A stretch of 64,000 nucleotides of DNA from Macrostomum lignano (taxonomy: Eukaryota): NCBI GenBank assembly GCA_002269645.1, contig NIVC01002757.1, positions 1 to 64,000 on the forward strand. The letters are read 5' to 3'. Within the stretch, counting starts at the first letter, position 1. Every line of letters starts with the position of its first letter. Below are positions 39,245 through 64,000 of the stretch, piece by piece. Position numbers and translations under genes: made by a program. The notes under the pieces were generated by a model. It saw nothing but the letters and a program-made list of their open reading frames with translations, was not told the DNA's origin and searched no databases.

Positions 39245-39305
<61 letters not shown>

Positions 39306-39310
39306 GCCTT

Positions 39311-39365
<55 letters not shown>

Positions 39366-39393
39366 GCCTTTCTGTCTGTCTGTCTGTCTCTCC

Positions 39394-39440
<47 letters not shown>

Positions 39441-39441
39441 A

Positions 39442-39481
<40 letters not shown>

Positions 39482-39486
39482 GCCTT

Positions 39487-39525
<39 letters not shown>

Positions 39526-42500: not shown

Positions 42501-43872
42501 CTGGCGCTTCGTCCGGCGCTAAACACGCCCGAAAATCCGTAGGGATCCGGAAGACGAGGACTGGAGGCGCGGGCGGCGGCGCTGGTCGATCCAGGAGGAC
42601 AAAACTGGATCCGGTGCTGACCACGCCGACAACTGGAGATACGGCTGGCAGCTCCGCGCGGCTGTTGCGCAGCCAAACTGCCGCCAGGACTGCGTATGAT
42701 GGGTTTTTGGTCTATTGGGTTGGTTTTAGTGCATGTGTCTTTTAACATTCTTTACGTTGGGTTCAGCTTTCTCCGGTTGGGGGTTCAGATTGCTCAGGTA
42801 GGGTTCAGATTTGTCAGGTAGGCTTCGGATTCATCAGGTAGGGTTTAGATTCCTTAGGTGGGGGGTTCAGATTCCTCAGGTGGGGGGTTCAGATTCCTCA
42901 GGTGGGGGGTTCAGATTCCTCAGGTGGGGGGTTCAGATTCCTCAGGTGAGGGGGGGGGGGTTCAGATCCTCAGGTGGGGGGTCCAGATTCCTCAGGTAGG
43001 GTTCAGATTACTTAGGTAAGGTTCAGATTCCTCAGGTGGGGGTCCAGATTCCTCAGGCGGGATTCAGATTCCTTAGGTAAGGTTCAGATTCCTCAGGTGG
43101 GGGTTCAGATTCCTCAGGTGGGGGGTTCAGATTCCTCAGGCGGGGGGTTCAGTTTCCTCAGGTGGGGGGTTCAGATTCCTCAGGTGGGGGGTTCAGATTC
43201 CTCAGGCGGGGGGTTCAGTTTCCTCAGGTGGGGGGGGGGTTCAGATTCCTCAGGTGGGGGGTTCAGATTCCTCAGGTGGGGGGGGGTTCAGATTCCTCAG
43301 GTGGGGGGTTCAGATTCCTCAGGTGGGGGGTTCAGATTCCTCAGGTGGGGGGTTCAGATTCCTCAGGTAGATTTCATATTCCTCAGGGGGGTCAGATATT
43401 TTATGTATGGTTCAGATTCCTCAGGGCTCACATTCCTCAGACGAGGCTAAGATTTTTCAGGTCTTCCAACTTCAACCTTCAGTAGCCTGCAGGTCGATTC
43501 AACCTATAAATCATATTATATCTATCTAACACCTCTCGCAGATCCTCTGTGCCCAGTTCTGCACTAACATCCCCGACGGAGCTGACGTCGGCGCCCCAGG
43601 CGTCGCAAGAGCGGCAGTCGGAGGCCGCAGCGGCGCCTCAGGTCCCGGCCACAGTTCCAAAGAGGCCAGTCGCTCGGCTTCTTTACGACGAGAGTGCCTA
43701 CAGGGACTCGTCGCTAATAGAACCTGTCGAGGGCGTCACGCCGCCGCCTCAGGTGCTGGTGTCCAGCACTTCCAGGCGGGGCACCGCTCGGCTGCCTTCG
43801 GGTGCTGCCGCTCTACTCGCGAGCAGCAGGGGCGGACGCGGCGGCAGAGGCGGCAGGAAAAAAAAGAATTAA
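9891..43872 (+). CDS. KIF20: Kinesin-6 family motor, KIF20A/KIF20B (MKLP2/MPP1/Subito)-like, with exon-amplified coiled-coil stalk
   Basis: Exons: 9891-9906 (MDQVK, tentative), 11597-12105, 12969-13192, 13938-14391, 15021-15767, 17309-17482, 18540-19133, 19611-19835, 19994-20110, 21095-21211, 21323-21406, [exon array 21625-38565], 39993-40109, 40481-40597, 40689-40805, 41142-41555, 42338-42693, 43542-43872 (TAA). All GT-AG with matching phases; total 7,674 nt. Motifs: KIYLRVRP, P-loop YGVTSAGKTHTIQG, long loop-6 insert, VWVSYAEIYNEVVYDLL, switch I NQQSSRSHS, switch II DLAGSE, INSSLLTL, VPFRESKLT, MIVNIS..DTLNVLRFSA (KIF20-type rather than KIF23-type). Basic C-terminal tail with RLLY and GRKKKN. 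Confidence 0.92.
11788..15360 (+). CDS. KIF20: Kinesin motor domain portion of the KIF20-like gene (exons 2-5)
   Basis: Conserved kinesin motifs in order across four exons joined in frame (phases 0, 2, 0). Confidence 0.95.
12264..12470. mobile_element. Small fold-back/MITE-like element in kinesin intron 2
   Basis: AAGACCGAAATTTCACAACGCCGAAAA at ~12264 and ~12330, partial copy at ~12391, and its reverse complement (TTTTCGGCGTTGTGAAATTTCGGTCTT) at ~12443-12470. Confidence 0.45.
13240..13870 (+). repeat. Degenerate intronic minisatellite (AAAATCTCCCATTTTCAGGG / ATCTTCTGAA)
   Basis: Repeated ~20-40 nt units in kinesin intron 3. Confidence 0.8.
14430..14915 (+). repeat. 22-nt intronic minisatellite GGGGAATTCAGATAGAGAGTCT
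   Basis: About 20 tandem copies in kinesin intron 4. Confidence 0.92.
15850..17135 (+). repeat. 24-nt intronic minisatellite GAAGG(C/A)TATTTAAGGGTGAGGCCT
   Basis: About 53 tandem copies in kinesin intron 5. The period is a multiple of 3, which explains the long spurious (RVRPEGYL)n ORF. Confidence 0.95.
17540..18450 (+). repeat. 23-nt intronic minisatellite TTTCAGAATCTGCCATTTTGTAG
   Basis: About 39 tandem copies in kinesin intron 6. Confidence 0.95.
19200..19545 (+). repeat. GA-rich low-complexity/minisatellite tract (GGAGATGGGAGAGGGAAGAGC)
   Basis: Purine-only degenerate repeat in kinesin intron 7. Confidence 0.85.
20170..21005 (+). repeat. 28-nt intronic minisatellite CAGATCCTCAGTTGCTGGGCCAGCCTCC
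   Basis: About 30 tandem copies in kinesin intron 9; the same family occurs inverted at 48447-49345. Confidence 0.95.
21625..38565 (+). repeat. Tandem exon array inside the kinesin: 20 x 135-nt exon A (VEKLRQSEAKLESISAESSAKDQQLLELQRRLDEAESEAENQLKQ) plus 3 x 87-nt exon B (LNQQLAQLQSQLAEKSRDSDKLSVELDE[M/T])
   Basis: Exon A starts: 21778, 22387, 23037, 23628, 24219, 25227, 26096, 27387, 27978, 28986, 29855, 31146, 31737, 32328, 33318, 34187, 35478, 36346, 37563, 38431. Each has a TTGAAG acceptor and CAG|GTGAGT donor, phase 0. Exon B: 21625-21711, 36193-36279, 38278-38364. Confidence 0.93.
21940..39245 (+). repeat. 18-20-nt G-rich minisatellite CAGATGGGAAACAGGGTGT following every exon A copy
   Basis: Starts ~25 nt after each exon-A donor. 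Variable copy number accounts for the different unit lengths. Source of the spurious (WETGCQMGNRVSDGKQGVR)n ORFs. Confidence 0.95.
39246..39705 (+). repeat. (TCTG)n microsatellite
   Basis: About 460 nt of TCTG with TTTC/CCTG variants at the end of the exon array. Confidence 0.97.
40120..40412 (+). repeat. 24-nt intronic minisatellite GCTAGTCCCACCCCTGTACAAACA
   Basis: About 12 copies right after the donor at 40110. Confidence 0.93.
40893..41085 (+). mobile_element. tRNA-derived SINE, 3'-truncated copy
   Basis: Pol III A box TAGCCTAGTGG, B box GGTTCGATTCC, then CORE-like GTGTCCTTGAGCAAGACGCTTAACTCTGCATTGCTTCAG..CACCCAGCTGTAAA. Highly similar to the copy at 52990. Confidence 0.85.
41625..42050 (+). 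repeat. 30-nt intronic minisatellite ATTTATTGATCTGCGTTTCTTAGAAATGAG
   Basis: About 14 tandem copies. Confidence 0.92.
42770..43445 (+). repeat. ~22-nt intronic minisatellite GGGGGGTTCAGATTCCTCAGGT
   Basis: About 30 copies with variable G-run length in the last kinesin intron. Confidence 0.92.
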
Positions 43873-45639: not shown

Positions 45640-46420
45640 GAGATTAAGAGGTGAGACTAGCGTGAGATTGAGGTGAGACTAGGGTGAGTTAGGGGTTAGA
45701 CTTGGGTGAGATAGAGGTTAGACTAGGGTGAGATAGAGGCTAGACTAGAGTGACATTGAGTTGAGACTCAACTCAGTAGGGGTTAGACTAGGGTGAGATG
45801 GAGTTTTGACTAGGATGAGATGAGATAGAGGTTAGACTAGGGTGAGATAGAGGCTAGACTAGAGTGACATTGAGTTGAGACTCAACTCAGTAGGGGTTAG
45901 ACTAGGGTGAGATGGAGTTTTGACTAGGATGAGATGAGATAGAGGTTAGACTAGGGTGAGATAGAGGTTAGACTTGGGTGAGATAGAGGTTAGACTTGGG
46001 TGAGATAGAGGTTAGACTTGGGTGAGATAGAGGTTAAACTAGGGTGAGATAGAGGTTAGACTTGGGTGAGATAGAGGTTAGACTTGGGTGAGATAGAGGT
46101 TAGACTTGGGTGAGATAGAGGTTAAACTAGGGTGAGATAGAGGTTAGACTTGGGTGAGATAGAGGTTAGACTTGGGTGAGATAGAGGTTAGACTTGGTTG
46201 AGATAGAGGTTAGACTTGGATGAGATGAGTTTAGACTTTGGTGAGATAGTTAGACTAAGGTGAGATAGAGGTTAAACTAGGGTGAGATAGAGGTTAGACT
46301 ACGGTGAGATGAGTTTAGACTAGGGTGAGATAGAGGTTAGACTAGGGTGAGATGGAGATTAGACTAGGGTGAGATAGAGGGGAGAATGGAATGAGATAGT
46401 AGTTCGACTAGGGTGAGATG
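45640..46420 (+). repeat. 22-nt intergenic minisatellite CTAGGGTGAGATAGAGGTTAGA
   Basis: About 30 degenerate copies, including an internal ~102-nt duplication near 45715-45920. Confidence 0.9.
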
Positions 46421-47014
46421 GAGGTTGTTTTCACTTCTTATTAAGTATATGACTAGCAGTCTAATCACTAGAAGACATATTTTGCTTGCTCGATCGAGTA
46501 AAACTGCTGACCTAAAATTATAGGATTTTTCGATTCAGTAAAAAATCACTTTGGCACTGTCAATAAATTTTTTGTGAATCGGTTTGACTGACTTGCTATT
46601 TTGATTGTTGCATGCTGTAGTCAAAGCGAAGAATAAAACAACAGGTGAAATTCTGATTTTGATCGAATGCACCTCCCGACTTGGATATCAGAACATAAAA
46701 ATCAACCGAAAAATCTTGTCAACTAGAAATAAATAATTTATTGGCAAAGGCAGGTGTCTTTTAAACACTACTGATTGAAAATTGGGTTGATCAGTAGTAT
46801 AATCATAAATCATGATTTGAGCTATCTGCTTGGCTCAGCGTAAACAGTCGGGGGTTGCAGATTGCAAAATTTCTGTATAAATTTGTTGGCCCCAGGAATC
46901 CAGATTTGCCTCTTGAGTTGTGTTAGCAAAGTTGTCTTTGGATCAGTGTTTCACCTTGGCAACTTGGAATTTGGATAGCAACAAATACAGCTCTTCATTC
47001 CACACGAATTGAAG

Positions 47015-50000
47015 ATGGCTGCTGGACAAGTGCCGCTTCTAGCTGCTCTTGTTTGCCTTGCAGCTCTGAGTGGCCCCACGTTGGCTCATAGTGGTGAGTT
47101 TCTTATAATTGTTGGCGCTGAGCGGCATACGCTACAGGTTGATACAGGTATGGATACAGGTATTTCTTGATGGATTGGACATTGAGGTGGAATTATAACT
47201 GGTAGATCAGGGTAGACATTAAGAGGTAATTAAGATTGGCAGATCATGGTAGACATTTAGGGGTAATTAAATTGGTAGATTGGGGTAGACAATGAGGGGT
47301 AATTAAGATTGGTAGATTGTGGTAGACTTTGAGAGGTAATTAAATTGGCAGATCAGGGTAGATATTGAGAGGTAATTTTAATTGGCAGATCAGGGTAGAC
47401 ATTGAGAGGTAATTTTAATTGGCAGATCAGGTAGACATTGAGAGATAATTTTAATTGGTAGATCAGGGTAGGCATTGAGAGGTAATTTTAATTGGCAGAT
47501 AAGGATAGACATTGAGGGGTAATTAAATTGGTAGATTGGGGAGATTGGGGTAGACAATGAGGGGTAATTAAGATTGGTAGATTGTGGTAGACTGAGAGGT
47601 AATTTTAATTGGCAGATCAGGGTAGACATTAAGAGGTAATTTTAATTGGCAGATCAGGGTAGACATTCAGAGGTAATTTTAATTGGCAGATCAGGGTAGA
47701 CATTCGGAGGTAATTTTAATTGGCAGATCAGGGTAGACATTCAGAGGTAATTTTAATTGGCAGATCAGGGTAGACATTAAGAGGTAATTTTAATTGGCAG
47801 ATCAGGGTAGACATTCAGAGGTAATTTTAATTGGCAGATCAGGGTAGACATTGAGAGGTAATTTTAATTGGCGGATTAGGGTGGACATTGAGAGGTAATT
47901 AAACTTCGTATATTGTGGTATAGACATTCAGAGATAAGTATAACTGGTAGTTTAGGGTACACATTGTTGAGAGGTAATAATTGGTAGATTAGGGTAGAAA
48001 TTGAGGGTAATCATAACTGGTACATGTAGATTAGGGTAGACATTATGACAAAAATCATATCTCTACCCAGGTAGATGGAAGCAGGTGTAGATATGCTCAA
48101 ATCAAAGTCATTTGCTTTCCTTAAACTCTCGATATAGACTGTTACGCCAGCGTCGGCGGCGCCAGAGGCCATATTTATCAGTTCGACGGCGGCAGGGTGA
48201 CTGCCAACCCCGCCCTCGGAGGCTGCCTTAAACGGGATCTGCTGTTGACGAGATCCTTTGCCGACAAGGATGCTTCATCGCTGTGCGAGCTGGAGATTCT
48301 GGCCAGCTTCAAAGCTGTCGGCGGTCAGCGCAGCGGCCTGTCCCGGTTGAGTGCCGTCACCGTTAAAGTCGATGGAAAGGTCTATCGACTGCTGGCTGGG
48401 CGGAAACTCACCGTGAGTTTGGCTGTTGTTGATCACTGTTTGGTTTGGATCTGGGAGGCTGGCCCAGCAACTGAGGATCTGGGAGGCTGGCCCAGCAACT
48501 GAGGATCTGGGAGGCTGGCCCAGCAACTGAGGATCTGGGAGGCTGGCCCAGCAACTGAGGATCTGGGAGGCTGGCACAGCAACTGAGGATCTGGGAGGCT
48601 GGCCCAGCAACTGAGGATCTGGGAGGCTGGCCCAGCAACTGAGGATCTGGGAGGCTGGCCCAGCAACTGAGGATATGGGAGGCTGGTGGTCCTGCAACTG
48701 GGGATCTGGGAGGCTGGCCCAGCAACTGAGGATCTGGGAGCCCAGAAACTGAGGATCTGGGAGGCTGGCCCAGCAACTGAGGATCTGGGAGGCTGGTGGT
48801 CCTGCAACTGGGGATCTGGGAGGCTGGCCCAGCAACTGAGGATCTGGGAGGCTGGCCCAACAACTGGGGATCTGGGAGGCTGGCCCAGCAACTGAGGATC
48901 TGGGAGGCTGGCCCAGCAACTGGGGATCTGGGAGGCTGGCCCAGCAACTGAGGATCTGGGAGGCTGGCCCAGCAACTGGGGATCTGGGAGCCCAGCAACT
49001 GAGGATCTGGGAGGCTGGCCCAGCAACTGAGGATCTGGGAGGCTGGTGGTCCTGCAACTGGGGATCTGGGAGGCTGGCCCAGCAACTGAGGATCTGAGAG
49101 GCTGGCCCAGCAACTGAGGATCTGGGAGGCTGGCCCAGCAACTGAGGATCTGGGAGGCTGGTGGTCCTGCAACTGGGGATCTGGGAGGCTGGCCCAGCAA
49201 CTGAGGATCTGGGAGGCTGGCCCAGCGACTGAGGATCTGGGAGGCTGGCCCAGCGACTGAGGATCTGGGAGCCCAGCAGCTGAGGATCTGAGAGGCTGGC
49301 CCAGCAGCTGAGGATCTGAGAGGCTGGCCCAGCAACTGAGCATCTGGGAATTCCAAAAGCTTCCTGAACTCTAGAAATGTTATGCTAGATATTCACACCC
49401 ATCAGGGCCAACCCTCAAGGCGTAGAGAGTGTACATTCCTTACGATCAGAAACCGTGTACACCCCGTGGGAGCATGTGTAAGACTCTGGTTGCCCAAGGC
49501 CAAACCGATATTTCGCCCAACCATCGCAGGTGAACGGCCAGCTAAAATCGGTGCCCCACGGGCCGGACAAAGGTGTGAGGATTTTCTTCTCCGGCGAAGA
49601 CCTGGTGCTGGCGCACAAGCGCTGCAACTTCTGGGTCGGCTTCGACGGAGACTGGACCGCCACCTACTGGCTGAGCGGCAAGTACCGCGGCAAGCTGGAG
49701 GGTCTGGCCGGCGACTGCGACGGACACGGCAAGGACGAAGTCGGCAGCTGGCTGTCCGAGGCCGGCTGCCGTCCGGTCAAGCGGAAGCCTCGATGCCTGA
49801 GCTCGGCCGCCAAGCGGGAGGCTGTACACCGGTGCAGTCGGGTGATTAACGGCAAGGACGGCTGCTTCAATCGCGAAGTTCTGCGGCCGTGCATCGCGGA
49901 TGCCTGCTCGGCTGAGGGGGCTCTCAGAAAGAAGATTCTGTGCACCAGCTTCTACCTGCAATCGAGACGCTGCGCCAGGCACCACAAGCCGCTGTCTTGG

Positions 50001-53000
50001 AGGCACCGAAGCGGATGTCGTAAGCTGTGTTTATAACTAATGAGTTGATGCGCAATTCACCTACTATAAGTAGCATCAATTAGCAATACTTTTATTCTTG
50101 TTTAAAAAAGGGAAAGTTTAGCAGCGGCCTTTTACAGGTGAAATCAGAGATAAGGTGAGGGTGGTTGGCGGCCCTCATCTCAGGTGAAATCAGAGATAAG
50201 GCGGGGGTGGGTGGCCGCCCTCCTCTCAGGTGAAATCAGAGATAAGGTGGGGATGGTTGGCGGCCCTCATCTCAGCTGAAATCAAAGATAAGGCGGGGGT
50301 GGGTGGCCGCCCTCCTCTCAGGTGAAATCAGAGATAAGGTGGGGATGGTTGGCGGCCCTCTCTCCTCACAGGTGAAATCAGAGATAAGGTGGAGGTGGGT
50401 GGCGACCCTCTCTCCTCACAGGTGAAATCAGAGATAAGGTGGAGGTGGGTGGCGGCCCTCTCTCCTCACAGGTGAAATCAGAGATAAGGTGGAGATGGTT
50501 GGCGGCTCTCTCTCCTCACAGGTGAAATCAGAGAAAAGGTGAGGGTGGTTGGCGGCCCTTATCTCAGGTGAAATCAAAGATAAGGTGGGTGGTTGGCAGC
50601 CCTCATCTCAGGTGAAATCACAGATAAGGTGGGTGGTTGGCAGCCCTCATCTCAGGTGAAATCACAGATAAGGTGGGTGGTTGGCAGCCCTCATCTCAGG
50701 TGAAATCACAGATAAGGTGGGGTGGGTGGCCGCCCTCTCCTCACAGGTGAAATCAGAGATAAGGTGGGGTGGGCGGCCACCCTCTCTCCTCACAGGTGAA
50801 ATCAGAGATAAGGTGAGGGTGTTTGGCGGCCCTCATCGCAGGTGATATCAAAAGTAAGGTGCCGTGGCCTCTGATTAAATTATCGATCAAACGCATGGCT
50901 TATCGACCTAAAATACTCAACCAAATCAGCCTCCTCAACAACAACCTTCAGCAATAAAGTGCGGCCCGAACGAGCACTTCACCAGCAGGGCCAGCCCCTG
51001 TCCGGCCACATGCGGCAGTCATTTCTTCGGCACACCTAAGAAATGCTTTCACCTGCCCAGCGCCGAAGGCTGTCGCTGCAAGCGAGGCTTCGTCCTGGAC
51101 AGCAGCAACCGCTGCGTGCCACCCAAGGAGTGCGAGTGCCTGACCAAGCTGTGCCTGGACAGAATGCCCCGGAAAAAGTGTCTGAAATGGCGAGCTCGCG
51201 GCCGGTGCAAGAGGTACCCGGAGGTGATGGCGCGATTCTGCCGCCTGACCTGCGGCCACTGCGAGACAAGATGCGGAGAGAATCAGTTTAGCGACAAATT
51301 GTGCAAAAATATTTTGCGGCAAGGGAAATGCAGCAAGCCGTTGTACAAGGCTGTCTGCGCGGCCACTTGCGGCCGCAATAAGTGTCGTGAGTTGCTTTTT
51401 TAGGGCTTGTTTTGAAATTTTATAATGATTTCTGGATTGTGTTTGCGTGTAGAAAGTTGGCGCCAAAATAGAGTCAGATAGCGCAAATTAAAAGCTAGTT
51501 GACGCCAAAAAGAGCGTTAAGATGGCGCCAAAATGGAGATTCAGTTAGCGCCGAAATTGAGTGTCAGTTTAGGCGCCAAAATAGGATGTCAGTTTGGGCG
51601 CCAAAATAGGATGTCAGTTTGGGCGCCAAAATAGGGCGTCAGTTTGGGCGCCAAAATAGTCAGTTGGCGCCAAAATATAGTGTCACTATGGCCGGCAAAA
51701 TAGAGCGTTAGTAGGCGCCAAAATAGAGAGTCAGTTAGCGCCAAAATAGAGTGTCCGTTTGGGCGCCTAAAAATGTCAGTTTAGGCGCCAAAATAGAAAG
51801 CCAGATAGCGCCAAAAACAGAGTCAGTTAGCGCCAAAATAGGGAAACTATCAGCAATTGTTTTCTTCAATATGTTCAAATCTTCAACTTTTGATTTGAAG
51901 CCTAAAGCCGTTCGCTAACTTCCTATTCAGGCTGCCCAAACAAGCGCCGGATCGAGTCCAAGTGCTCCACGCGGTACAAAAATCGAATAATAAAATCGAT
52001 TCGTTATCTGCCCGGTCCGCACGGCAAGTGCATCAAGAGCACTGTAGTCCGCTACGAACCGTGCGGGGGTGAGTTCGTGTTCTATGGACACCTTTTTTAC
52101 ATAGAAAAAAACTGAGGATTGCTGATCGGGCTTTGTGAATGGCTGGTGAATGGGCTTTAGCACCAAGGGGCTTTAGCACCAAGGGGCTTTAGCACCAAGG
52201 GGCTTTAGCACCAAGGGGCTTTAGCACCAAGGGGCTTTAGCACCAGGGGCTTTAGCACCAACGGGCTTTAGCACCAGGGGCTTTAGCACCAGGGGCTTTA
52301 GCACCAGGGGCCTTAGCACCAAGGGGCTTTAGCACCAAGGGGCTTTAGCACTAGGGGGCTTTAGCATCAAGGGGCTTTAGCACCAAGGGGCTTTATCACC
52401 AAGGGGCTTTAGCACCAAGGGGCTTTAGCACCAAGGGGCTTTAGCACCAAGGGGCTTTAGCACCAAGGGGCTTTAGCACCAAGGGGCTTTATCACCAAGG
52501 GGCTTTAGCACCAAGGGGCTTTAGCACCAAGGGGCTTTAGCACCAAGGGGCTTTAGCATCAAGGGGCTTTAGCACCAGGGGCACCTACTCATAGATGCCA
52601 TGGCCTTAAAGGACACACTCTGAGCAGCTGCAATAAACCCATTCATTTGCAGCCTGTCCCAGCATAGCCAAGACCAAGCTGCAGCCGTGCAATTACTGCA
52701 AAGGTGTGCGAACAGGCAAGCGCACTGTGCAATACCGAGAGACCCACGGCAAGCACCGCTGTCTGCGTCGAGTCACTCGAGTCAGCAAGAAGTGTCCCTG
52801 CCCTCCCTCTGGCCAGCTGAAGGTTGTCAGCAGCAGAAAATGCGTCAAACACACCGAACTGGTCCGTGTCACCAAGGTGTTCAAAGCCGCCGAGAAGTGC
52901 ACCAAGTGCAAGCGAATAACCCAACGACAAGTTGTGAAGAAAATTAGTGAGCTTGTTATAACAATTTTGTTTTTTAAGCATTAGATTAAGGCAGGGGTCG

Positions 53001-56000
53001 TAGCCTAGTGGTTAGAGCGTCGGACTCGCGACTTGAAGGTCGGGGGTTCGATTCCCGATCGCACTGGAACAATTTGTGTCCTTGAGCAAGACGCTTAACT
53101 CTGCATTGCTTCAGCTCACCCAGCTGTAAAATGGGTGCCAGCATTAGCTGGGGATAATTGAGGGTGTGTGGTGACCCCGCCGTTAGCAACCTGCAGATGT
53201 GCCGCGCAATAGCTGCGGCTGAGCTGTCGGTTGCACATGTGGCCCAATTAGCGAGGTTACAGAGATTGTCTCTCTCAGAGAGTCACTCTCACCGTGTGTA
53301 ATTTACCTTTCAATCTATCTACGCTTCTACCTTTTTAATCACAGAATGCTCGGGCAGGCGAACCGTTCTCAAGAAGTGCACGTCGGGACGCAAGCATCGC
53401 AAGAAGCTGGTGTACACTAAGCAAGCGAGAAACTGCAAATGCATCTGGAAGCTGGCCAAGGAGCAGAACCTGCTCTGCTATTGTAGCAAGAAGCGCAGCG
53501 TAAATCGTAGTTGCTCGAACGGCTATCGGATTAAGAAAATAACTGGATTGCGGCTCAAGAACAACAAATGCGTTCGTTGGGTGCGCCAAGTGAAACGGAA
53601 GATTAACTGTCCCGAGAGGCGCCACGCAAAGCTGATTTGCCAACGAAAGACGTGCAAAGCGACTAAGATTTCCAGCTATTACCAGCTCAGTGGATGCAAG
53701 TGCAGTAAAAAAGTTGTTAAGCGGCTGGTTGGAAAATGCTGTGAGTTTGGCAAAAATATTTCTAATCTGTCTTGCTTTGTCGACTCGACCTGTTTTTTGC
53801 CCGACGTATGCCAAATTTAGCTCTACATTCTATACTTTCTACTCATCAGTAGACGAACTCTGACACAAAGTCTTCACTAAATAGAAAATGCGAAACGAAA
53901 CGAAGTCGAAGCTAGTCTATATCCTTGGAAATCCTGGGTGCCAGCGGCCCAGGCTCGATTCCAAGTGCAGTCCCATTAATTTGGGGCTTGAATTGAAATC
54001 TCGGCTTGGCTCTGCTCGTGAAATTAACGGCCTTGAAGGCCAAACCCAAAGGCACAGTGAAGTGTACATGCCTAACGATAAATAAAGTCAGGGCTGCTGT
54101 ACACTCCTGTGTGAGTGTGTGCCTGTGCGTATGACTGCGTACGTATCCGCGCGCTTGTGTGCCTGCTCAGGGGAGCCGGCAGAATGGGCGGCAGTAATGC
54201 CTCTCGCAGATTGTGTGACAATGTCGCTTAAAGTGCGCCAGGCCTCTTAAAAATCTTTAAATACAGTTTTTAGTAGTTGTTTTTAAAAACTGCTTGATTT
54301 TTTCTTAGAAACATTGAATTTTTTCCACTTTCAAAAGGTTGTCCGAAGGGCTACAAGAAAATTGTGCGAGTCGATCGCTATTGGAAGAAGCTGATCAAGG
54401 TGCAATACCTGCTAGAAGATCACAAGTGTCGTAAGAAGACAACCACCAGAAAGTACCGGGTTGCTTGTCCACCAGCTAAAAAGGAGGCTCGATGCGACAA
54501 AGTCACTGGTGCTAAGGTGTTCACGAAAATCTGGTACGTCCTCAAAAATGGCGACTGCGTCAAGAGGCGGTCGAAACGAGTGGCGAGACTGCGTGAGTTT
54601 CGATTTGCGCTTTTTGCTAGATTTTTGACACCTTTAAATCGCATTCCCTATCTATAAAGCTGGTGCCAGACAGTGGTAAAATACTCATTTAGTAAATATT
54701 TTAAATATTTTTGGATGGTTTCATAGATAATGATCCTGTCTAACAGGTGATGATCCTGTCTAACAGGTGATGACCCTGTCTAACAGGTGATGATCCTGTC
54801 TAACAGGTGATGATCCTGTCTAACAGGTGATGATCCTGTCTAACAGGTGATGACCCTGTCTAACAGGTGATGATCCTGTCTAACAGGTGATGATTTTGTC
54901 TAACAGGTGATGATCCTGTCTAACAGGTGATGATCCTCTCTAACAGGTGATGACCCTGTCTAACAGGTGATGATCCTGTCTAACAAGTGATGATCCTGTC
55001 TAACAGGTGATGATCCTGTCTAACAGGTGATGATCCTGTCTAACAGATGATGACCCTGTCTAACAGGTGATGATCCTGTCTAACAGGTGATGACCCTGTC
55101 TAAGAGGCTATGATCCTGTCTAACAGATGATGACCCTGTCTAACAGTCTATGATCCTTCTAACAGGTGATGAACTTGTCTAACAGGTAATCACCATGTCT
55201 AACAGGCTATGATCATGTCTGATTGTCTGTATATCCCTGTCTGGAGCAAGTTATGTATTTTGTCTGTTTGTCTGTGCAATTTACAAGCTTTTCTGCAGAC
55301 TAAACTGAATTAGAGTTCGAACTCACGCAGACTGCCTGCACGGTGTCTACCGACACGTCGGGCCCTGCCATCGCTCTGGCGGCAAAGGCGTCTCACGCTA
55401 TCGCAAAGTCCGCTACGAATATTATCGCCGAAAGAAGGGCAGCTGCAGCTGCGAGAAAGTCCGGCGCACCGTCAAAGAGTTGTGCGGCTGTCCGCAGGGT
55501 AACTTCGTCAAAACGACAAAATGTCCGAAGACTGGCTGCAATAGTAAGAAGTGCGGCTCCAAGTGCCACTATACTAAGACGTACTTTTACTTTACGAAAT
55601 GGTCGTATGATGGAGACAAACATCACAAGAGAAAGCACTGCCATGCTAAGGTACGTCATGAACTTTAATCTAGCCACCCGTGAAAGTTGTACCCGTCATA
55701 TTTCATAAGCAATGGGAGCATCAAATGAAACTATTCCAGGTGTTTAAGCACATCCATTTCCCTTGCTGCTGCGCCAGCAACAAGCGCGTGAAGACTTGGT
55801 GCCGTTCGCACAAGCACTCCGTCAAACAAGTCACCTACACCAAGCTCAGCAAGGACAAACACGAATGCGTCCGTTTGAGACGCACGACGACCTCCAGAAT
55901 TCGATGCAAGCACAATAGCGAGGGGACCGCCATTAAGAAGCGTCTGCCGCATCCGAAGCCTGGATACTACTATATCGCCACCTATCGCTGGCACGTGAAG

Positions 56001-59000
56001 AACTGTCGCTGTCTGTCAACCGTTGCCAAGCGAACCTGTCGCAAGCGATGCAATCCGACTAAAACGAGTCGACGCTGCAATCGCGTCACCGGAGAATGGA
56101 TCACTAGGAAGGTGAGCTGGAAGCTGCGCGGCTGCCGGACCTGCGTTCAACGGGTGCGAGAGGCTCGAACTCCCGTGCATTGTCGACGGAAGACAAAACG
56201 AACTAAACGGTGCGACAAAAAAACTGGTATTTTAACCGTCACGGTGACGCATTGGAAGCGCAAGGGATGCAAATGCGTGCAAAAGAAGCGAGTCACACGA
56301 AGACGTTGCAGTGAGTGCAAAATTCCCTTTAAATATTCAACTGCAGCACCGGTAGTTGATTTTTCGGCTAATTTAAGCTAATCTTTTATTTCAGAATGCC
56401 CCAAGCCGATCGTTGGAAAACGCCACTGCGACCACGAGTCGAGCGCTTACGTCACTCGCACCACCTACTGGCTGTTGAAGTCTGGAAAGTGCGTCAAGCG
56501 ACGCAGAGTCAAGGTCAGCCAAGTGACCTGCTCGCATAGCGTCAAACGAAAGAGCGTCTGCAAAGCAAAGTCGGGAGTGAAGTTGGTCTACATTGGAGTT
56601 TTGAAGCCTAAAGGATGCCGCTGTGTCAGGCAATGGTCTCTAGAGAATCGACTTCGGTGCAGTAAGTAGTCTGCACATTGTCATCATTATCTGACCTCTA
56701 CAGACGATATCATACAGAATGAAAGCAACTTTTTCCTCAGATTGCAACCGTGAGAACAACGAAGCCAAGCAGGACCGCAGAAAATATTGCGATAAACATC
56801 GCAACCTGAAAGTGACAGTAACCTATCGCTACGTGCTGAAGAAGGGTTCCTGCGTTCGCAAGCGTCAAAAGAGATATCGGGCGTACAGCTGTCCGCCATC
56901 GTTCACCGAGAAGAAAAAGTGCGACGTTAAACGACGCATTCAGGTGACGCTGACGCACTACTCGGTCAAGCGGAAGTGCTCCTGCGTGCGAGCAGTTAAG
57001 CGCCGATCGCGCAAATGCGGATGCGCTCACAAGGTGCGCCGGAAACGCTATTGTCGCAGAGCTGAGGGCGTAGTAGTGACCGAATTGCATACTGAAAGGT
57101 GGAGTCACAAGAAGGAGCGTTGCATCAAAAAGAAAACTACAAAGAGCCATCGAGTTTGTAAGTCGATTGTAGAACTGCTTTGTTGTTGCTAAATATGTTT
57201 TTAACAATCGAATAAATTACCTCCATTTACAGCATGCAGCCAGAAGACTCACTATAGCGTCACAAAGTGCATTAAGAATAAGCACTACGTTGAGACAAAA
57301 GTCTACGAAGTTCGCAAGGGCTGTCGATGCATTAAGCGAAGAGTCAAGAAGAGACGAAACTGCCGTAAGTGAAACTTTTTGCGCATTTAAGCTTTATGTA
57401 TTTTTAAGTTTATCGATAGTACGTACGATTTTTTCTATCTAATTAGCAAATGTTTTCATGAGAACATTATTATGCACCCTATTCAGACTGCAAGACAATA
57501 ACCCGCAAATACAAGTGCCCGAAGGCTGGCTTTACTCGACGAATTGTCACCCAGATTCGACGTTGGGACTCCGCTAAAAAGCGTTGTAAAACAGTTCGCT
57601 ACGTAACTCGCCGCATTCGATGCCGCTGCCCAGCTGGTGGACGCAAACGCCTTTGTCGCGCTGGTTCCTGGGTTACTGAAACCATATCCTTTGCTCTGCG
57701 TCACGGCCGCTGTTACAAGCGCGTAAAAAGGCGCAAGCAGAGGGTGACGTGTCGACACAAGATCCGCCGTAGATACACAGCTTGTAAGAAAACTGGTTGC
57801 AAGAAACGCCACATCTACACGATGAAGCTGAAACTTGACAGCAAGCGTTGCTCGTGTTACTATGCGGTTGTCAAGCGAATCGCATGCCCCTGCTGCTGTC
57901 CAAAGACTGTGAAACATCCAAAGCGTTGCGTCAAGGACGGCAAAGCTTGGCAACAAGTGACTGTTGGCTATCGAGTTTTGAGCGGCAAAAAGTGCGGCTG
58001 CAAACGTTGGCTAAAGCGAAAGACACGCCCAGTCGCGTGCACCAAGCTTCGCCAGCTTGTTTGGCAGCCCTGCGACCGACACAAATGCATCAGCCATCAG
58101 CGCAAGGTTCACCACGTGGTTCACGGATGTCGGTGCCGCAAGATCAGCCGGCTCACAGGAAAGAAGCGCGTCTGCTGCTGTCGAGGCAAGACAAAGCGAA
58201 AGCGCTTCTGCCGTCGGAGCGCAATCTACGAGCGAGTGACGCTAGTGCGGCTTCGGAACTGGCGTTGTGTGCGTATCAAACAATTGCGATTACTAAGATC
58301 TTGGCACTGCAAGGCCAAACGGAAGACTGTAGTAGGAAAGTAAGTTAAATATCGATTCCGTAAAATTTATATTTGAGGGAATGCTTTTAAAGATTTCTAG
58401 ATTCATCGCATGCCCGATATTTTCAAAGTATTGTCTCATCAATTTTAACTTACAACATGATAAAATATATAAAAACATCCCAGGTGCGATCGTACTACCT
58501 GTAAACAGCCGCTGCACACTCTAGTGTACAAGGTTTCCCGACCTCATTGCCGCTGTCGGCGAGTAGCCATCAAGCGACGCCACCGCACCTGTTGCTGTCT
58601 ACAGCGACCTAAGCGAACGAAACGCTGTGACTCTGCCACTGCGGCCTGGGTTCACACCCGAGTCTACTACGTATTCAATGCTTCGAAGCACGTTTGCGTA
58701 CGTCGACGAAGCACAGTCCGAACGCCCGTTCGCTGTTCTAAGCATGTAAAGCAAAAGAAAGATGGATCGTGCAATCGGCACACCTGTCGTCGAGTTGTTA
58801 AGCAGATCGATCACTACGTTCATCATTGCCGGTGCCGGCGTCGGGTTAAGCGTGTCAGTAAAGTCTGCTGTTGTCCACGAGCAAAACGCCTGCCAGTGCG
58901 CTGCGACAGGTCCAAGCACCAGTGGCTTCGGAGTAAGATCACCTGGCATCTCAGTCATGGTCGTTGCGTTAAGCGAGTCACCACAAAGAGGCATCAACTG

Positions 59001-62000
59001 ACCTGTCGACGCGATGTTAAAACTCGAGTACTAGCGTGTAGCCGTCGCACTTGCAAGCGTAAAATTGTAAAAATTTTACACAGACCCAAGGGCTGCCGCT
59101 GCGCTATTCGGCACAAAATCACCCACCGAACTTGCTGCTGCAGACCAGCTGTTAGGTCCAATGTCAAATGCGTGAATGATCGCGATGTTGTTAGAATCAC
59201 TAAGCGCCGAGTGTTTAACCGTCACACCTACAAGTGCAAAACTAAAGTTGTCAAAAAATTGCTGCACCGGCTGCACAAGTGTCGCAACACAATCTACCGA
59301 AGCAAATGTAATAAAAAGACTCGGCACCGAACAGTTCGCAAGGTGCTACGGCGACCGAAAAAGTGTCGGTGCAAAGTTTACCGTCGAGTCACTCATCGAG
59401 TGCTGTGCAGTAAGTTTCATTTCAAGCTTTTGTATGTTAAATAGTAGCTTGTGGCTTTTTTATATTATCCAATTGTTCAAATCAAATTATCTACCGTCAG
59501 GTTGTCCAAACACTCGCGTTAAGCGAACCAAATGCAGCAAGACCAGCTGTCACAAGTCTATCGTGAAGACCTGGTACACCTCGTCTGGCCACGGAGCTCA
59601 TTTCAAGTGCCGCAAGCATCGCCAGGTAATTAAAGTTCGCTGCTGTTGCAAGCGCAACCCGACCAGTCGAGTATATTGCGATCGGAGCAGCGGAGCGACA
59701 AAACGAGAGAGCAAATGGACTGTGTTTATCGCTTCTAGACGAGCCTGCGTGCGTCGCAGGAAAGTCGTGCTCGTTCGTCGACTTGGTAACCGAAAGCCTC
59801 TTCTTATATTGCGATAGCATGTTCTATTTTAAATAGTAAAGATTGTTATTGATTCCCCTTCCAGCTTGCAAAAGAGGCGGTTGCAAGTTGGGAAAATGCA
59901 ACAAAAGCACCGGCTATCGAATCAAAGTTTGCGTTTCCTATAAGCCTCTAAGGCATAAGTGTAGTTGTAAAAAGCGCACTGTTAAACGAAAGATCATCTG
60001 TCGTAAGTGTTGCTGAGAAATACGAGTATCTTTGTTTAATTTTAATTTAAAAAACAGTCATTCTATAAAACTCCCTGATCCGAATTTCTGCCAGACTGTC
60101 CAAAGAGTTACACAAAAAAGTTCTGCAAAGGTGACGAGCGGAAGCTTGAAGTCAGAACTAGCTGGAAAATTTCGCGACTCGAAAATCGTTGCGTCAAGCG
60201 CGTCAAAACTATTACTAACCATCTAGAATGTCCTAAGCGTCGTTGGCGCGAAAAGAAGTGTCCAACTAAGCCAGACTGTCAAGGAAAAATCACCACTAAT
60301 TGGTATCAGTTGAAAAAATGCCGCTGCAAACGAATTACCCGATCCAAACCCATCGTTTGCTGTTGTCCAAAGCCGACTAGAGTAAAGCGTTGCTTAGAAA
60401 ACCAATGGGTAACTGTGCTGACTAAACACAATCTATTCAAGGGCCACTGCTTGCAGAAGGTCAAACGGATTCGAGTCAGTGTTCGATGCAAGCGAAAGCG
60501 AGTACGAATCGGTCGCTGCAGAAAGGATTGCAAAAAGCATCGAGTTATTCTGCTCTACGAAGTGAAGAATTGCAAATGCGCAATAGCAAAGCGAATCATT
60601 CGCACTAAAATGTGCTGCTGTCCTCGACCGAAGCACTACAAGCGCTGCAAGGCAGCCAAGGGAGTTGTCCAAAACATCAAACAGTTTTGGCGCCTCTCCC
60701 ACGGAAAGTGTCTCAAGCGTAGGCGGATTGTCTCGCGCAAAATTGTCTGCCCGAAAGGTTCGACTCGAGCCAGCAAGTGCAACCGACACACCCGCAAACA
60801 GAAAGTTGTGATCGTGCGCTACAGTCGAGTAGCCTGTCGGTGCCATCGCCGCAAACGAATTCGTCAATTGCTGTGCATGTGTCGACCGCCGCGTACTGTG
60901 AAAGAGAAGTGCACTTCAGAGCGAATTAAGAGGCGGGTTTACCGGATCACCTATCATTTGTCGCATCCGCGCAGCAAACTAGTTAAGAGGCATTGTCTAA
61001 AGCGTCGGAAAGTATGGTAAGAAGCTGTTCGGTCCTGAAGTTTGCAAGTTGCTAACTGAAATTTAATTATAATAGATTTTACGAGCGCACGTTTTAATTT
61101 CAGGTATACGGAACCTTGCCGCTGTCCGAAGCCTACTCGTCGACAGCGCTGTTCTCGCAAGGGCACAGTTCTGACAACCAAAATCCGCAAATGGCGTCTT
61201 AAAATAGTTAAGAGATTGCATCATCGTAGATGGATTCGCAGGCGCACGTGCGTGCTGAAAATAACGAAGAAGCACACTAGAATCCGATGCAAACGTCGAA
61301 GTGTTTCCTGGACTAAGTGTCGCAATTTTCGCCGAAAGAGGACCACAGTCAAACACTGGGTGCATCGGTGCAAATGTCGACGACGCGCTGTAGTTCGAGT
61401 GTTTGCTTGCAGTGAGTGAAAGTATTAATAAAAATATCTTCGGCCATTTGTATTTAGAAGCTGTTTGCAATCACTTTTAAAAACACTTACTTCGATACAC
61501 TGACGCATCCAGATTGTGCGAAGAAATCTACCAAAAGTCGTCGCTGCGACGCTAAAGCCGGAGACCTGGTCTACACGCGCAAGTCCTGCTACAGCAAGCG
61601 CGGCGCCGCCACGTGCAGCTGCACTACCCGACGCTGGCGCAAACACATCAACTGTCCGCGTCGCTACGTACGGCGTCGACTCACTAAGCGACACTGCGGG
61701 CTCAAGCGACACCGCGCTTGGTACAATCGGTTCTCAATCGAATGGACGAAACGCCGCGGTTGCGGTTGCGTGCGCAAACGACGCACAGTGCTGCGCTTCT
61801 GCCATTGCCAGCGAGGTTCCAAACGCGCCGGGTGCGCCATTAACGGCAAGACATGGGTAAAAACGAAGGTGACTTATCGCCCCAGCGGCTCCAAGCATGG
61901 CGGCTGTAAGAAAGTGAAACGAGTCACCAAGCGGCGCATTTTGTGCCGCCGACATGCCGGCAAGCCAAAAGTTAAAATCGGTGGCTGCAGCAAGCACTGC

Positions 62001-64000
62001 AAGCGTTCTGTGTCCGTGCGCCAGTGCTACGTGAAAAACTGTCGCCGAAAACTGTACATCCAAAGTCGTTTGCAGTTGTGCTGCAAGCCGAAACCAAAGC
62101 GGCATCGCTATTGTGAGAAAAAATCTGGGAAGTGGGTCACAAAGACATTGCACTACAAGTGAGTTAAATGCCTCCGTCTATGTACTTTTATTAGGACCAT
62201 TTTGTTATTCACTCCTACGTTTATGGATAATATGAAACAAACGCTTTCCCTAATGTTGTTTCTCAGACTTGTTCCATCTGGTCCCTGCTGAAAGACCGAC
62301 ATGGTCGAGTCCTAGCTAAGCAGCTGAAGGTGGTAGCCACAACTAAACGTCACTATCGAAAAGTACGCTGCCCTCGAAATAAAACTCGCGAAAATTGTCA
62401 CCGACGTTCCGGCCGCTGGGAGAAAACCCAAATTACTTGGCGTCGCGTTGGCTGTCATTGCAAACGTCGAATCGTTCGTAAAAGGGGTCGATGCAGTGAG
62501 TTCTTCTCTGAAAAAATCGTTAATTCGAATCACTTTTCTTAATTAAAATGCAAGCATTAAACTTAAATATTATTACTAAACCAAAACAGAGTGCCCACCA
62601 AAGCGAGTCCGCTGGGGTCGGTGCCATAACAGACACAAGGTTCGCACCGTCATCAAATTTTTCCTGAGGAGTCAAAAATGTCACCGCGAAGTCAAGAAGC
62701 GACTATTCCTGTGTGCTTGCCCCAAGCCTCGACGTTACACCGTGTGCGACGGCAAAGGTGCCTGGAAGAAGTGTCATGTGACGTATCGTCTTAAATTCCG
62801 TCAACAGCGCTGCATCAAAAAGCGACACTGCCGAAGTCGCCTACAAACGTGCGAGGCGTCGTCTGAAACTCGTAGCAAGTGCAAGCATTGCCACCGAATA
62901 ATTCGCACAGTCTCGTGGCGCTTGAACCGACGTAAGTGCTCGTGCACTCGAATAACTCGCAAGCGAAAGGTCGAATGCGATTGTCGGAAGCGGAATAGTC
63001 GGAAGACTGTTTGCAAGCACGGAGCGTTCGTCACGAGCATTGTCAAGTATCATCAAAAAGGCGAGAAGTGTGCCAAGGTTGTCCGAAAGATTACAAGAGC
63101 TGTCCGTAAGTTTAACCTTCTTTTTTCGGTAAAAAGCTACTCATATTAGCGATGCAAATTACTCCTAAATATAATGTATTTATCGTGCAACACTCAATCA
63201 GGCTGCAGTCGTCGCCACATCAAGCGAATTTTGAAGGGCACCTGTGTGAAAAAGGCTGGTCATAAGCGCCGCGGCTACCAGAAGCTGTTACGGCTGTGGC
63301 ACGAGCGTCGTGGTTGCAAATGCTACCGAAAACGAGTCTATTCCTGGGTGCCATGCGTCTGTCACCTGATTAAGAAATACCGAACAAAACGATCGGTTTA
63401 TTGCAGCCGGGGTCACGTGACTGTTCACAAGAAAGTTTATTACGTTCTAAAGAGGAAGAGCCACAGATGTGTAAAGCGTGTCCACAAACGAAGGACTCCA
63501 GTTGGTGAGATTTATGTTTAAGCTTATTTACTGGTTTTAAGCTAATCTGTAGGCAGCACAAAGCAAATCGAAATTCAGGATAGTTGGTTAGGTATCTATT
63601 TAGGTCTACAATCAGTGAATTTAGGTTAGTTATAGTTGTACTGATGCAATGTCTACTGATGCAATAACTTCCAGTATGCAAGGGCACCAGGACCCGACGC
63701 AGTCGTTGCAAGCCAAACGGCAAAGGCGACAAGTTTTCTGTCACACGAGTTCTGCGTCAGCGCAGCGATGGCAAATGCGGCTGTGCTTGGCGTTCGGAGA
63801 GCACGCGTAAAAATGTTTGCCACTGCCGTCCACCTCGCCGAATTAAGCGCTGCGTGCAGAATAAGACGCGTCAACAAATCCTTATCCGCTACCACCCAGT
63901 TCGCGGACGCAGTCACTGCAAAGGAAAGCGCCGTGTTTACAACAAGCATCTGTCCTGCCCGAGCAACTTCTCCCGACGAGACAAGTGTCATCGATGTACT
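47015..64000 (+). CDS. Giant secreted protein: signal peptide - atypical VWD - C8 - TIL - 2x ShKT - ~2,750 aa Cys/Lys/Arg-rich modular region (3' end beyond the window)
   Basis: Exons: 47015-47093 (MAAGQVPLLAALVCLAALSGPTLAHS), 48138-48412, 49530-50019, 50952-51386, 51931-52068, 52653-52946, 53345-53740, 54338-54592, 55331-55650, 55740-56310, 56395-56661, 56741-57157, 57233-57364, 57487-58339, 58484-59409, 59501-59785, 59865-60002, 60095-61016, 61104-61411, 61513-62158, 62267-62495, 62590-63105, 63202-63504, 63675->64000. About 9.5 kb coding (~3,170 aa in window). All junctions are GT-AG and phase-matched except 62158/62267 (see findings). Confidence 0.85.
47200..48040 (+). repeat. 37-nt intronic minisatellite GGCAGATCAGGGTAGACATTGAGAGGTAATTTTAATT
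   Basis: About 20 degenerate copies in intron 1 of the secreted-protein gene. Confidence 0.9.
48138..50019 (+). CDS. VWD-like and C8-like domains of the secreted protein (exons 2-3)
   Basis: DCYASVGGARGHIYQFDG (cf. VWD C..xGDPHY.TFDG), AVTVKVDG...RKLTVNGQ, WVGFDGDW...LSGKYRGKLEGLAGDCDG (cf. Y.GK.CGLCGNFDG), then C8-like C..VING..CFNREVLRPCIADAC....LCTSFYLQSRRC......WRHRSGC. Confidence 0.75.
48447..49345 (-). repeat. 28-nt minisatellite (reverse complement of the 20170-21005 family)
   Basis: GATCTGGGAGGCTGGCCCAGCAACTGAG x ~30; the minus-strand translation matches the LLGQPPRSSVAGPASQILSCWAS pattern seen at 20 kb. Confidence 0.95.
50136..50850 (+). repeat. ~43-48-nt intronic minisatellite CAGGTGAAATCAGAGATAAGGTGGG..GGCGGCCCTCATCT
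   Basis: About 15 copies. Confidence 0.9.
50960..51386 (+). CDS. TIL domain followed by two ShKT domains (exon 4 of the secreted protein)
   Basis: TIL: CGPNEHFTSRASPCPATC..C....EGCRCKRGFVLDSSNRCVPPKEC. ShKT: CLDRMPRKKCLKWRARGRCKRYPEVMARFCRLTCGHC and CGENQFSDKLCKNILRQGKCSKPLYKAVCAATCGRNKC. Confidence 0.85.
51460..51845 (+). repeat. Degenerate ~22-nt repeat built on GGCGCCAAAATAG
   Basis: About 16 occurrences of GCGCCAAAA in intron 4. Confidence 0.8.
52152..52580 (+). repeat. 15-16-nt intronic minisatellite GGGGCTTTAGCACCAA
   Basis: About 27 tandem copies. Confidence 0.95.
52990..53325 (+). mobile_element. tRNA-derived SINE, longer (probably near full-length) copy
   Basis: A box TAGCCTAGTGG, B box GGTTCGATTCC, CORE-like central segment, extra 3' body and an ATTTACCTTT-type tail reminiscent of CR1/L2-clade 3' ends (partner assignment is inference). 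Confidence 0.85.
54728..55200 (+). repeat. 20-nt intronic minisatellite TGATGATCCTGTCTAACAGG
   Basis: About 23 tandem copies. Confidence 0.95.

Follow-up and report, generated by a model that had tools for sequence, protein, structure and literature searches.

What kind of protein is encoded where, on the + strand of a 64,000-nucleotide stretch of the Macrostomum lignano genome, one open segment after another from position 47015 to the last base abounds in Lys, Arg, His, and Cys and contains little Asp or Glu? The stretch, hereafter the window, comprises bases 1–64000 of contig NIVC01002757.1 (assembly GCA_002269645.1), and coordinates refer to it unless stated otherwise. A first-pass annotation had proposed a giant secreted, disulfide-rich, polycationic modular protein, and this view was confirmed by the gene model, the amino acid composition, and Pfam. 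The gene is BOX15_Mlig016097g3 (hereafter Mlig016097), the 5′ 57% of which occupies 47015..64000 on the + strand, while the rest extends to ~72.6 kb of the contig. It is deposited in GenBank as PAA55421.1, "hypothetical protein BOX15_Mlig016097g3"; the first-pass annotation had asked whether the protein is already characterised, and although the entry exists, the protein is not characterised. In our judgement there is an even chance that the repeat unit of this chain is a fold and domain family new to Pfam and PDB, that the protein is a ~5,000-residue structural component of the rhabditophorans sampled, and that its macrostomid form, with a charge of ~+1,500 per chain, possibly serves secretion or adhesion. 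This form would possibly rank among the most highly charged large polycations known.

The gene is a functional coding sequence

The gene model within the window comprises 24 exons on the + strand from the ATG at 47015 to the window end, all with GT-AG borders. Tail exons were placed by a splice-aware dynamic-programming model and head exons were curated by hand, after which two corrections were made. The corrected model translates into 3,174 residues with zero stop codons. Phase 1 was found in 18 of the 23 introns; phase-1 introns are usual for shuffled extracellular modules. The model is 99.8% identical to PAA55421.1 across 2,700 amino acids and 99.56% identical, with zero gaps over 2,952 amino acids, to P0015, the 5,270-residue protein model of a second gene copy on contig NIVC01002505.1 (locus L003). 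Between 55331 and 64000, the longest + strand open reading frames (ORFs) encode 323, 313, and 293 amino acids, and 200 shuffles of the same region gave a longest ORF of 125 amino acids on average and of 205 at most.

PAA55421.1 ends at 62291 after 2,723 amino acids (…LHYKLVPSGPC, followed by the stop codon TGA at 62289–62291). At the site of this stop the second copy reads through (…LHYKLVPSGPLLKDRHGRV…), and the DNA alignment places GGTCC-CTG of the window opposite GGTCCACTG of the second copy. The annotated stop thus stems from the absence of one base between 62284 and 62285, either through an assembly indel or through a very recent mutation. Downstream of the frameshift all exons are open, and the 1,346 bases of exons 21–24 match the second copy in all but one position. 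The GenBank model, truncated by a single-base indel, is therefore due for correction. Our initial model had bridged the frameshift by a weak donor-acceptor pair (62112/62295); this bridge was dropped, since the second copy shows the true junction. In early UniRef models the locus is represented by frameshifted fragments, and the label 'NTR domain' on some of these is not reproduced by Pfam.

In the diverged 5′ part of the two copies, exons are 96–100% identical with one single-base gap (exon 3), whereas introns are 78–94% identical with many indels. The ratio of non-synonymous to synonymous substitution rates (dN/dS, Nei-Gojobori) was 0.16 in the head and, with 20 synonymous against 7 non-synonymous changes, 0.10 in tail exons 5–8, values that cover the diverged 5′ part, the copies being 99.6% identical and uninformative on constraint from 54.8 kb on. 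Exon-over-intron conservation and these low ratios demonstrate that the gene of PAA55421.1 is a functional protein-coding sequence.

As a separate observation, identity between the copies is mosaic when 46000–64000 is compared with L003, amounting to 85–92% up to about 54.3 kb and to the higher level beyond 54.8 kb; gene conversion may account for this, or an assembly that joined haplotype and homeologue sequence.

The repeat unit is a di-module with a predicted double-hairpin fold

The tail had been described in the first-pass annotation as a series of 40–50-residue modules with a recurrent Cys pattern. The Cys pattern was essentially right, but the unit is larger, a di-module of ~80 residues with 8+2 Cys. 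In 21 aligned modules, three Cys are invariant (C1-x19-24-C2-x12-C3), and 3-Cys modules alternate with 5- or 7-Cys modules, a pattern best read as a repeat unit of ~79 residues made of a pair of modules. A hidden Markov model built from seven M. lignano pairs detected 21–31 copies per homologue and, when iterated, collected 79 di-modules from five proteins. Their consensus is C-x4-[C]-x13-C-x-C-x10-C-[C]-C-P-x9-C-x20-C-x12-C, in which eight Cys are near-invariant and the bracketed pair, C6 and C34, is facultative. Both members of this pair were present in 43 di-modules, neither in 34, and only two were mixed (Fisher p = 4.7e-20). Since the two Cys are present or absent together, they bear the signature of a facultative disulfide, which would close the base of the first hairpin described below. 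Within one protein, di-modules are only 17–33% identical to one another. The whole protein contains 49 of them, and the first 30 lie in the window.

Structure prediction was performed with AlphaFold2 on a di-module in exon 15 (58770..59006, + strand; CNRHTC…HQLTC, 79 amino acids). The predicted local distance difference test score (pLDDT) was 88 with seven paralogous sequences and 97.0 with 51 sequences from four species, all five models of the latter run scoring 95–97. Both runs gave one topology, with two hairpins of 12-residue strands (7–18/21–32 and 51–62/65–76), in line with the β-hairpins suspected from the sequence at first reading. In this topology C6 and C34 lie on either side of the base of hairpin 1, in agreement with their covariation. 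We therefore predict with high confidence that each di-module forms two β-hairpins pinned by four disulfides. The two hairpins are probably packed antiparallel, because only such packing gives even Cys numbers at both ends, that is, at tips plus bases.

Searches for known relatives support the earlier impression that the modules are undescribed. Pfam detected no family on the tail exons, none beyond VWA and ShK on the whole orthologues described below, and, when 51 di-modules were scanned one by one, none that recurred. Two profiles searched against PDB sequences gave no match. Foldseek against PDB returned best E-values of 1.5–1.6, with none below 1 among the best 50 of 236 weak matches; the best-scoring hits were long basic hairpins of ribosomal-subunit chains with a template modelling score of about 0.37. 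Taken together, the results are good, though not absolute, evidence that the predicted structure is a new fold, small elongated domains being hard for Foldseek. The nearest likeness is to the TSP1 repeat and to midkine/pleiotrophin, which are also small, elongated, disulfide-pinned antiparallel β modules, often basic and heparin-binding, with Trp/Arg on their strands. As had been proposed, however, the modules are not canonical TSP1 repeats: Pfam TSP_1 (PF00090) had no match at E<=1 in the exons, the orthologues, or the 51 di-modules, neither WSxW nor CSxTCG is present, Cys number and spacing are different, and AlphaFold2 gives two two-stranded hairpins instead of the three strands of a TSP1 repeat.

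The array is conserved in parasitic flatworms and its charge is graded

Homologues were sought by word-indexed protein search. The 323-amino-acid exon alone retrieved one frameshifted M. lignano fragment, the head alone retrieved M. lignano fragments only, and orthologues surfaced only when the entire 2,717-amino-acid tail was the query. Besides PAA55421.1 (100% identical), the tail matched Schistosoma japonicum KAH8867000.1, named "von Willebrand factor type A domain-containing" (E = 2e-80), and Sparganum proliferum BHF74425.1 (E = 4.5e-54). In addition, a 12.9-kb contig of run SRR8820788 carries a homologue in one unbroken 4,171-codon ORF. A HMMER search of 1.84 billion representatives with a 43-position profile of the M. 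lignano B-module recovered one M. lignano fragment; this profile is too short and too K/R-biased, and its result is silent on the distribution outside flatworms.

The closest comparison along the whole chain was obtained with S. mekongi KAK4474636.1 (5,554 amino acids), where one BLAST high-scoring segment pair joins M. lignano residues 78–5269 to S. mekongi residues 173–5553. The numbers of di-modules are 49 in M. lignano and 50 in S. mekongi, and of 41 M. lignano di-modules, 12 have their best S. mekongi match at the colinear position, as against about 1 expected by chance. KAH8867000.1/TNN07514.1, KAK4474636.1, and BHF74425.1, all of them uncharacterised entries, resemble the M. lignano protein in the 79-residue di-module with 8+2 Cys, in its 49–50 copies, and in a C-terminal ShK-like end. 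A VWA domain is present once, at the same relative position, in all orthologues and in M. lignano itself, where it is located outside the window. Furthermore, the motif YEPCG-x-CP encoded by M. lignano exon 5 is kept in Schistosoma and Sparganum, and S. mekongi shares TIL-ShK-ShK close to the N-terminus. The parasite orthologues differ from the M. lignano protein in that they are only 23–25% identical to it, have no VWD head, and carry a lower charge, and in that the metal site of the VWA domain is intact in Sparganum only. Because 49–50 di-modules are colinear, the array was already present in the common ancestor of M. lignano and Schistosoma; it thus predates the split of Macrostomorpha and Neodermata and is not a recent expansion.

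A di-module variant with 9 Cys was observed at orthologous sites of S. japonicum (P0008, 456–542) and S. mekongi (P0013, 1834–1920).

The tail was said at first reading to exceed 2,700 residues, to have few acidic residues, and to be still open at the window end; inside the window it has 2,747 amino acids, 3.2% Asp plus Glu, and no stop. It consists of 16.8% Arg and 15.8% Lys (together 32.6%), 4.6% His, and 9.8% Cys, and the isoelectric point (pI) and composition calculation called for at that time gave pI 11.1 and a net charge of +807. Gly accounts for 4.0% of the protein, and six N-glycosylation sequons are found in the 2,747 tail residues. P0015 has a net charge of +1,480. Per di-module, the net charge is +21.5 in M. 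lignano, +18.3 in the SRR8820788 species, +7 to +8 in Schistosoma, and +2.4 in Sparganum. Among the five proteins compared, strong polycationic character is limited to M. lignano and the SRR8820788 species. The extreme charge is therefore lineage-specific, in contrast to the domain array, which is old in flatworms.

A VWD-TIL head and downstream VWA and PAN domains frame the array

The head is encoded by exons 1–4 and has the order signal peptide, VWD, Cys-rich linker, TIL, ShK, ShK. Exon 1 (47015..47093) contains the start codon and the signal-peptide sequence MAAGQVPLLAALVCLAALSGPTLA (47015–47086) and ends in the phase-1 donor GTGAGT; the signal-peptide-like character was read from the sequence, and PAA55421.1 has the identical N-terminus. 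VWD is divided between exon 2 (48138..48412; first half, DCYASVGGARGHIYQFDGG…) and exon 3 (49530..50019; second half, to 49739) and was matched by Pfam at 1.3e-7, or at 4.5e-8 when the VWD region was scanned alone, exceeding the gathering score. Exon 4 (50952..51386) encodes TIL (50960–51133; Pfam 2.3e-9 to 3.6e-10) and both ShK copies (51143–51262 and 51272–51385; Pfam 4.9e-8). A VWD-C8-TIL-ShKT2 head had been proposed, and of its components all except C8 were recovered by Pfam. At the C8 position, between VWD and TIL (amino acids 189–283), there is a 95-residue stretch with 9 Cys, running from 49740 to the end of exon 3 plus 5 bases of exon 4, in which Pfam found no C8 match at E<=1. Because the N-terminus is signal-peptide-like and all domain types are extracellular, the protein is taken to be secreted, as its sequence indicates.

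The full-length protein has about 5,480 residues, about 57% of which are encoded in the window. Past the window (locus L001) the gene continues with more module exons, followed by VWA (Pfam 2.3e-8), an ShK-like domain, PAN/Apple (PAN_1, 6.3e-11), two ShK-like domains, and further modules. Two of these downstream ShK-like copies score 17–19 bits, below the 20.9 cut-off, and the third has no ShK match. The whole layout therefore reads: head, about 40 di-modules, VWA, di-modules, ShK-like, PAN/Apple, ShK-like, modules, and a C-terminal ShK-like end. In the last 1,320 amino acids Pfam detected no CTCK, no lectin, and no EGF match, and the C-terminus of the full-length copy is ShK-like. The M. lignano VWA domain is located at about 31180–31650 of L001 (contig 68.2–68.7 kb), and the metal site of the S. 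japonicum VWA reads DETIIS.

In its head, Mlig016097 resembles mucins, VWF, zonadhesin, and SCO-spondin, which likewise are giant, secreted, disulfide-rich proteins with an N-terminal VWD followed by TIL, and multimerisation through a D assembly is plausible. Unlike these proteins, it has one VWD only, no detectable C8, no mucin domain rich in Pro, Thr, and Ser, and neither TSP1 nor LDLa repeats, and the bulk of the chain is made of another domain. The Balbiani-ring silk proteins of Chironomus offer a different parallel, being giant secreted chains of short, highly charged, Cys-containing repeats that form underwater fibres and cements. A relationship in sequence is not expected; Balbiani-ring repeats are recent, near-identical tandem copies, whereas the Mlig016097 di-modules are ancient and divergent.

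A link to the K/R-rich giant proteins published from flatworm adhesive glands had also been drawn, and here the comparison was negative. Mlig-ap1 (GenBank MH586844), which provides cohesion in the duo-gland adhesive of M. lignano, has 5,407 amino acids, with Lys/Arg regions at both ends and a central core of C-lectin, vWD-C8-TIL, and 17 EGF domains (PMC6410801); its basic regions are Gly/Arg/Lys low-complexity sequence (PMC9229212). Both proteins come from the same species, are similar in size, secreted, extremely K/R-rich, and Cys-rich in parts, and both contain vWD and TIL. In Mlig016097, however, the basic regions are predicted folded, Cys-rich hairpin modules with Gly at 4%, VWD is N-terminal, ShK, VWA, and PAN are present, and no C-lectin or EGF match was found in the exons or the C-terminal 1,320 amino acids. 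The Mlig-ap1 antibody peptide SRKPRRKNRKSRKP was found neither in the protein nor in any of the six reading frames of the window. Architecture, composition, and the missing peptide thus rule out identity with Mlig-ap1, and the gene differs from the published one (PMC6410801, PMC9229212).

A structural polymer is the favoured function

With slightly better than even probability, we regard the protein as a structural polymer of an extracellular matrix or secretion that is multimerised by disulfides and binds polyanions. The chain would be a long, stiff, protease-resistant string of beads, each bead a rod of disulfide-stapled hairpins. In the free-living forms, the N-terminal VWD-TIL may join one chain to another by disulfides, in the manner of von Willebrand factor and the gel-forming mucins, while VWA and PAN could tether the polymer to a partner in the matrix or on the cell surface. 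The hairpin surfaces of M. lignano, with about +21 per di-module, would bind and condense polyanions such as sulfated glycans, the glycocalyx, or negatively charged substrata, and this binding could be strong even in sea water. Schistosomes and tapeworms are not known to have duo-gland adhesive organs or rhabdites. The presence of orthologues in such animals favours an older, shared structural role over functions tied to organs of free-living worms. The ancestral role may thus be a general one, and the macrostomid charge and VWD head may represent a derived secretory use.

Several observations weigh against a disulfide-linked structural polymer. The VWD head, found in M. lignano and the SRR8820788 species, is absent from the Schistosoma and Sparganum proteins, and VWD multimerisation is therefore not a conserved feature. 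Mlig016097 is also without the C-terminal cystine-knot dimerisation domain of mucins and VWF. The metal-ion-dependent adhesion site (MIDAS, DxSxS) of the VWA domain is degenerate in M. lignano (DLHSS), compared with an intact DESVS in Sparganum. If real, the frameshift at 62284/62285 would give a truncated 2,723-amino-acid protein from the window copy. For hairpin packing, and for the disulfides besides C6-C34, the basis is Cys parity together with secondary structure. About ten di-modules lack the Cys at position 20 and so carry 9 in all, which makes any disulfide map provisional; they hint at a free thiol, or at an inter-module or inter-chain disulfide. Finally, searches of the literature and of supplements yielded no expression, localisation, or proteomic datum for the gene; they also contained no mention of Mlig016097, of a characterised Schistosoma orthologue, or of run SRR8820788.

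Among the more specific functions considered, a matrix protein of an epidermal or gland secretion (rhabdites, frontal-gland mucus, or cement gland), packed with acidic glycans and expanding on release, is unlikely but retains the most weight. Polycation-polyanion packing is a common way of condensing secretions, rhabdites take up acid dyes, a sign of basic protein, the VWD-TIL head is mucin-like, and the two most cationic members of the family are the two with a VWD head. Nevertheless, the colinear array occurs at equal length in Neodermata, which are not known to have rhabdites, a Pro/Thr/Ser mucin domain is missing, and the few N-glycosylation sequons do not speak for a mucin-like secretion.

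An adhesive or cohesive component of the duo-gland organs comparable to Mlig-ap1, whose positive charge bridges glue to glycocalyx and is displaced by a polyanion on release, is improbable. Extreme positive charge, giant size, and VWD-TIL are common to Mlig016097 and Mlig-ap1, and in M. lignano heparin blocks attachment and cations block release (PMC6410801). Against this stand the report of only two secreted adhesive proteins in M. lignano, double RNA interference of which removes all adhesive vesicles (PMC6410801), as well as the absence of C-lectin, EGF, and the antibody peptide and the Cys-rich modules in place of Gly/Arg/Lys low complexity. The orthologues in schistosomes and a tapeworm, animals not known to have such organs, point in the same direction.

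A secretion of the eggshell, cocoon, or reproductive tract is a shade less probable still. Cys-rich, crosslinkable secreted proteins are typical of eggshells and the family is found in egg-laying flatworms, but known flatworm eggshell precursors are small and Tyr/Gly-rich. Moreover, a long and apparently intact orthologue is kept in Sparganum proliferum, which is known only as an asexually proliferating larva, and the gene ID was not found in the text-form supplements of two reproduction-focused M. lignano papers, the stored files of which are possibly incomplete.

It is very doubtful that the chain serves as a polyprotein precursor from which cleavage at dibasic sites would release dozens of short antimicrobial or toxin-like peptides, cationic and rich in Cys. 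K-R often directly precedes the first Cys of M. lignano modules, ShK domains are present, and a cationic β-hairpin is a classic antimicrobial shape. These dibasic linkers, however, are not kept in Schistosoma or Sparganum, the even Cys count of the conserved unit requires both hairpins, and a single VWA, a single PAN, and strict colinearity over 5,000 residues fit one big structural chain better. A tail that is a decaying or mis-assembled repeat array without coding function, as the one-base frameshift and the fragmentary, frameshifted early UniRef models might suggest, is the least credible of all and is refuted for the gene as a whole by a dN/dS of 0.10, by the other exons, which are all open and match the second copy fully or nearly so (one difference in the 1,346 bases of exons 21–24), and by full-length orthologues.

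If a structural polymer built of di-modules is the correct reading, the known disulfide-rich extracellular domains would gain a new member, whose fold is confidently predicted and has no solved relative and which is a target for structure work and Pfam curation, and flatworms, free-living and parasitic alike, would be seen to share a giant protein with a conserved array. The orthologues of schistosomes and the tapeworm, being large, extracellular, and apparently restricted to the phylum, are worth a look as tissue markers or antigens. From M. lignano (+21) to the tapeworm (+2), the family would provide a natural charge series on one scaffold, which raises the question of what extreme charge does and is relevant to how polyelectrolytes adhere under water and how secretory granules are packed. 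New in this work are the di-module with its facultative disulfide, the double-hairpin prediction, the continuation of the chain, through VWA and PAN, to ~5,480 residues, the single missing base that explains the truncated annotation, and the flatworm-wide colinear orthologues with graded charge.

Tail exons, introns, and surrounding sequence

The tail begins with exon 5 (51931..52068), which encodes the first tail module (RCPNKRR…YEPCG). It continues on the + strand with exon 6 (52653..52946), whose acceptor at 52653 was set from the GenBank model and P0005, and with exons 7 (53345..53740), 8 (54338..54592), 9 (55331..55650), 10 (55740..56310), 11 (56395..56661), 12 (56741..57157), 13 (57233..57364), and 14 (57487..58339). 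Exon 15 (58484..59409), the largest, holds 3.5 di-modules and is followed by exons 16 (59501..59785), 17 (59865..60002), 18 (60095..61016), and 19 (61104..61411). The donor of exon 20 (61513..62158), AA|GTGAGT at 62158/62159, was set from the second copy. The missing base falls in exon 21 (62267..62495), after which come exons 22 (62590..63105), 23 (63202..63504), and 24 (63675..64000); the last is cut by the window end, and its ORF goes on in L001.

The 5′ part of the gene has eight long introns, of which six are each filled by a separate minisatellite: intron 1 (47178..48011; 37-bp unit, filling the intron), intron 2 (48447–49349; 28 bp), intron 3 (50135–50861; 46 bp), intron 4 (51455–51841; 25 bp), intron 5 (52152–52582; 16 bp), and intron 8 (54730–55220; 20 bp). 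Tail introns are only 75–182 bp long and repeat-free. Intron 6 contains one of two copies of an element resembling a tRNA-derived short interspersed nuclear element (52999–53126); the other is located in the upstream gene region (40939–41030). The two are near-identical over about 140 aligned bases, and ARAGORN found no tRNA gene.

Upstream of Mlig016097, exons of a coiled-coil gene are distributed over 38269–43870 on the + strand (e.g., KVEKLRQSEAKLESISAESSAKDQQLLELQRRLDEAESE). UniRef A0A1I8JNR8 (P0002, 'TRAF-type domain-containing') joins these exons to the VWD exons of Mlig016097, which is an artefact of gene modelling. Further upstream, a very large minisatellite of 19-bp units (ACAGGGTGTCAGATGGGAA) spans 21938–39248, with about 670 copies in its core (24379–37352); it has a strong G-over-C skew of about 0.4, all three of its + frames are open, and a (TGTC)n tract comes next at 39245–39707.

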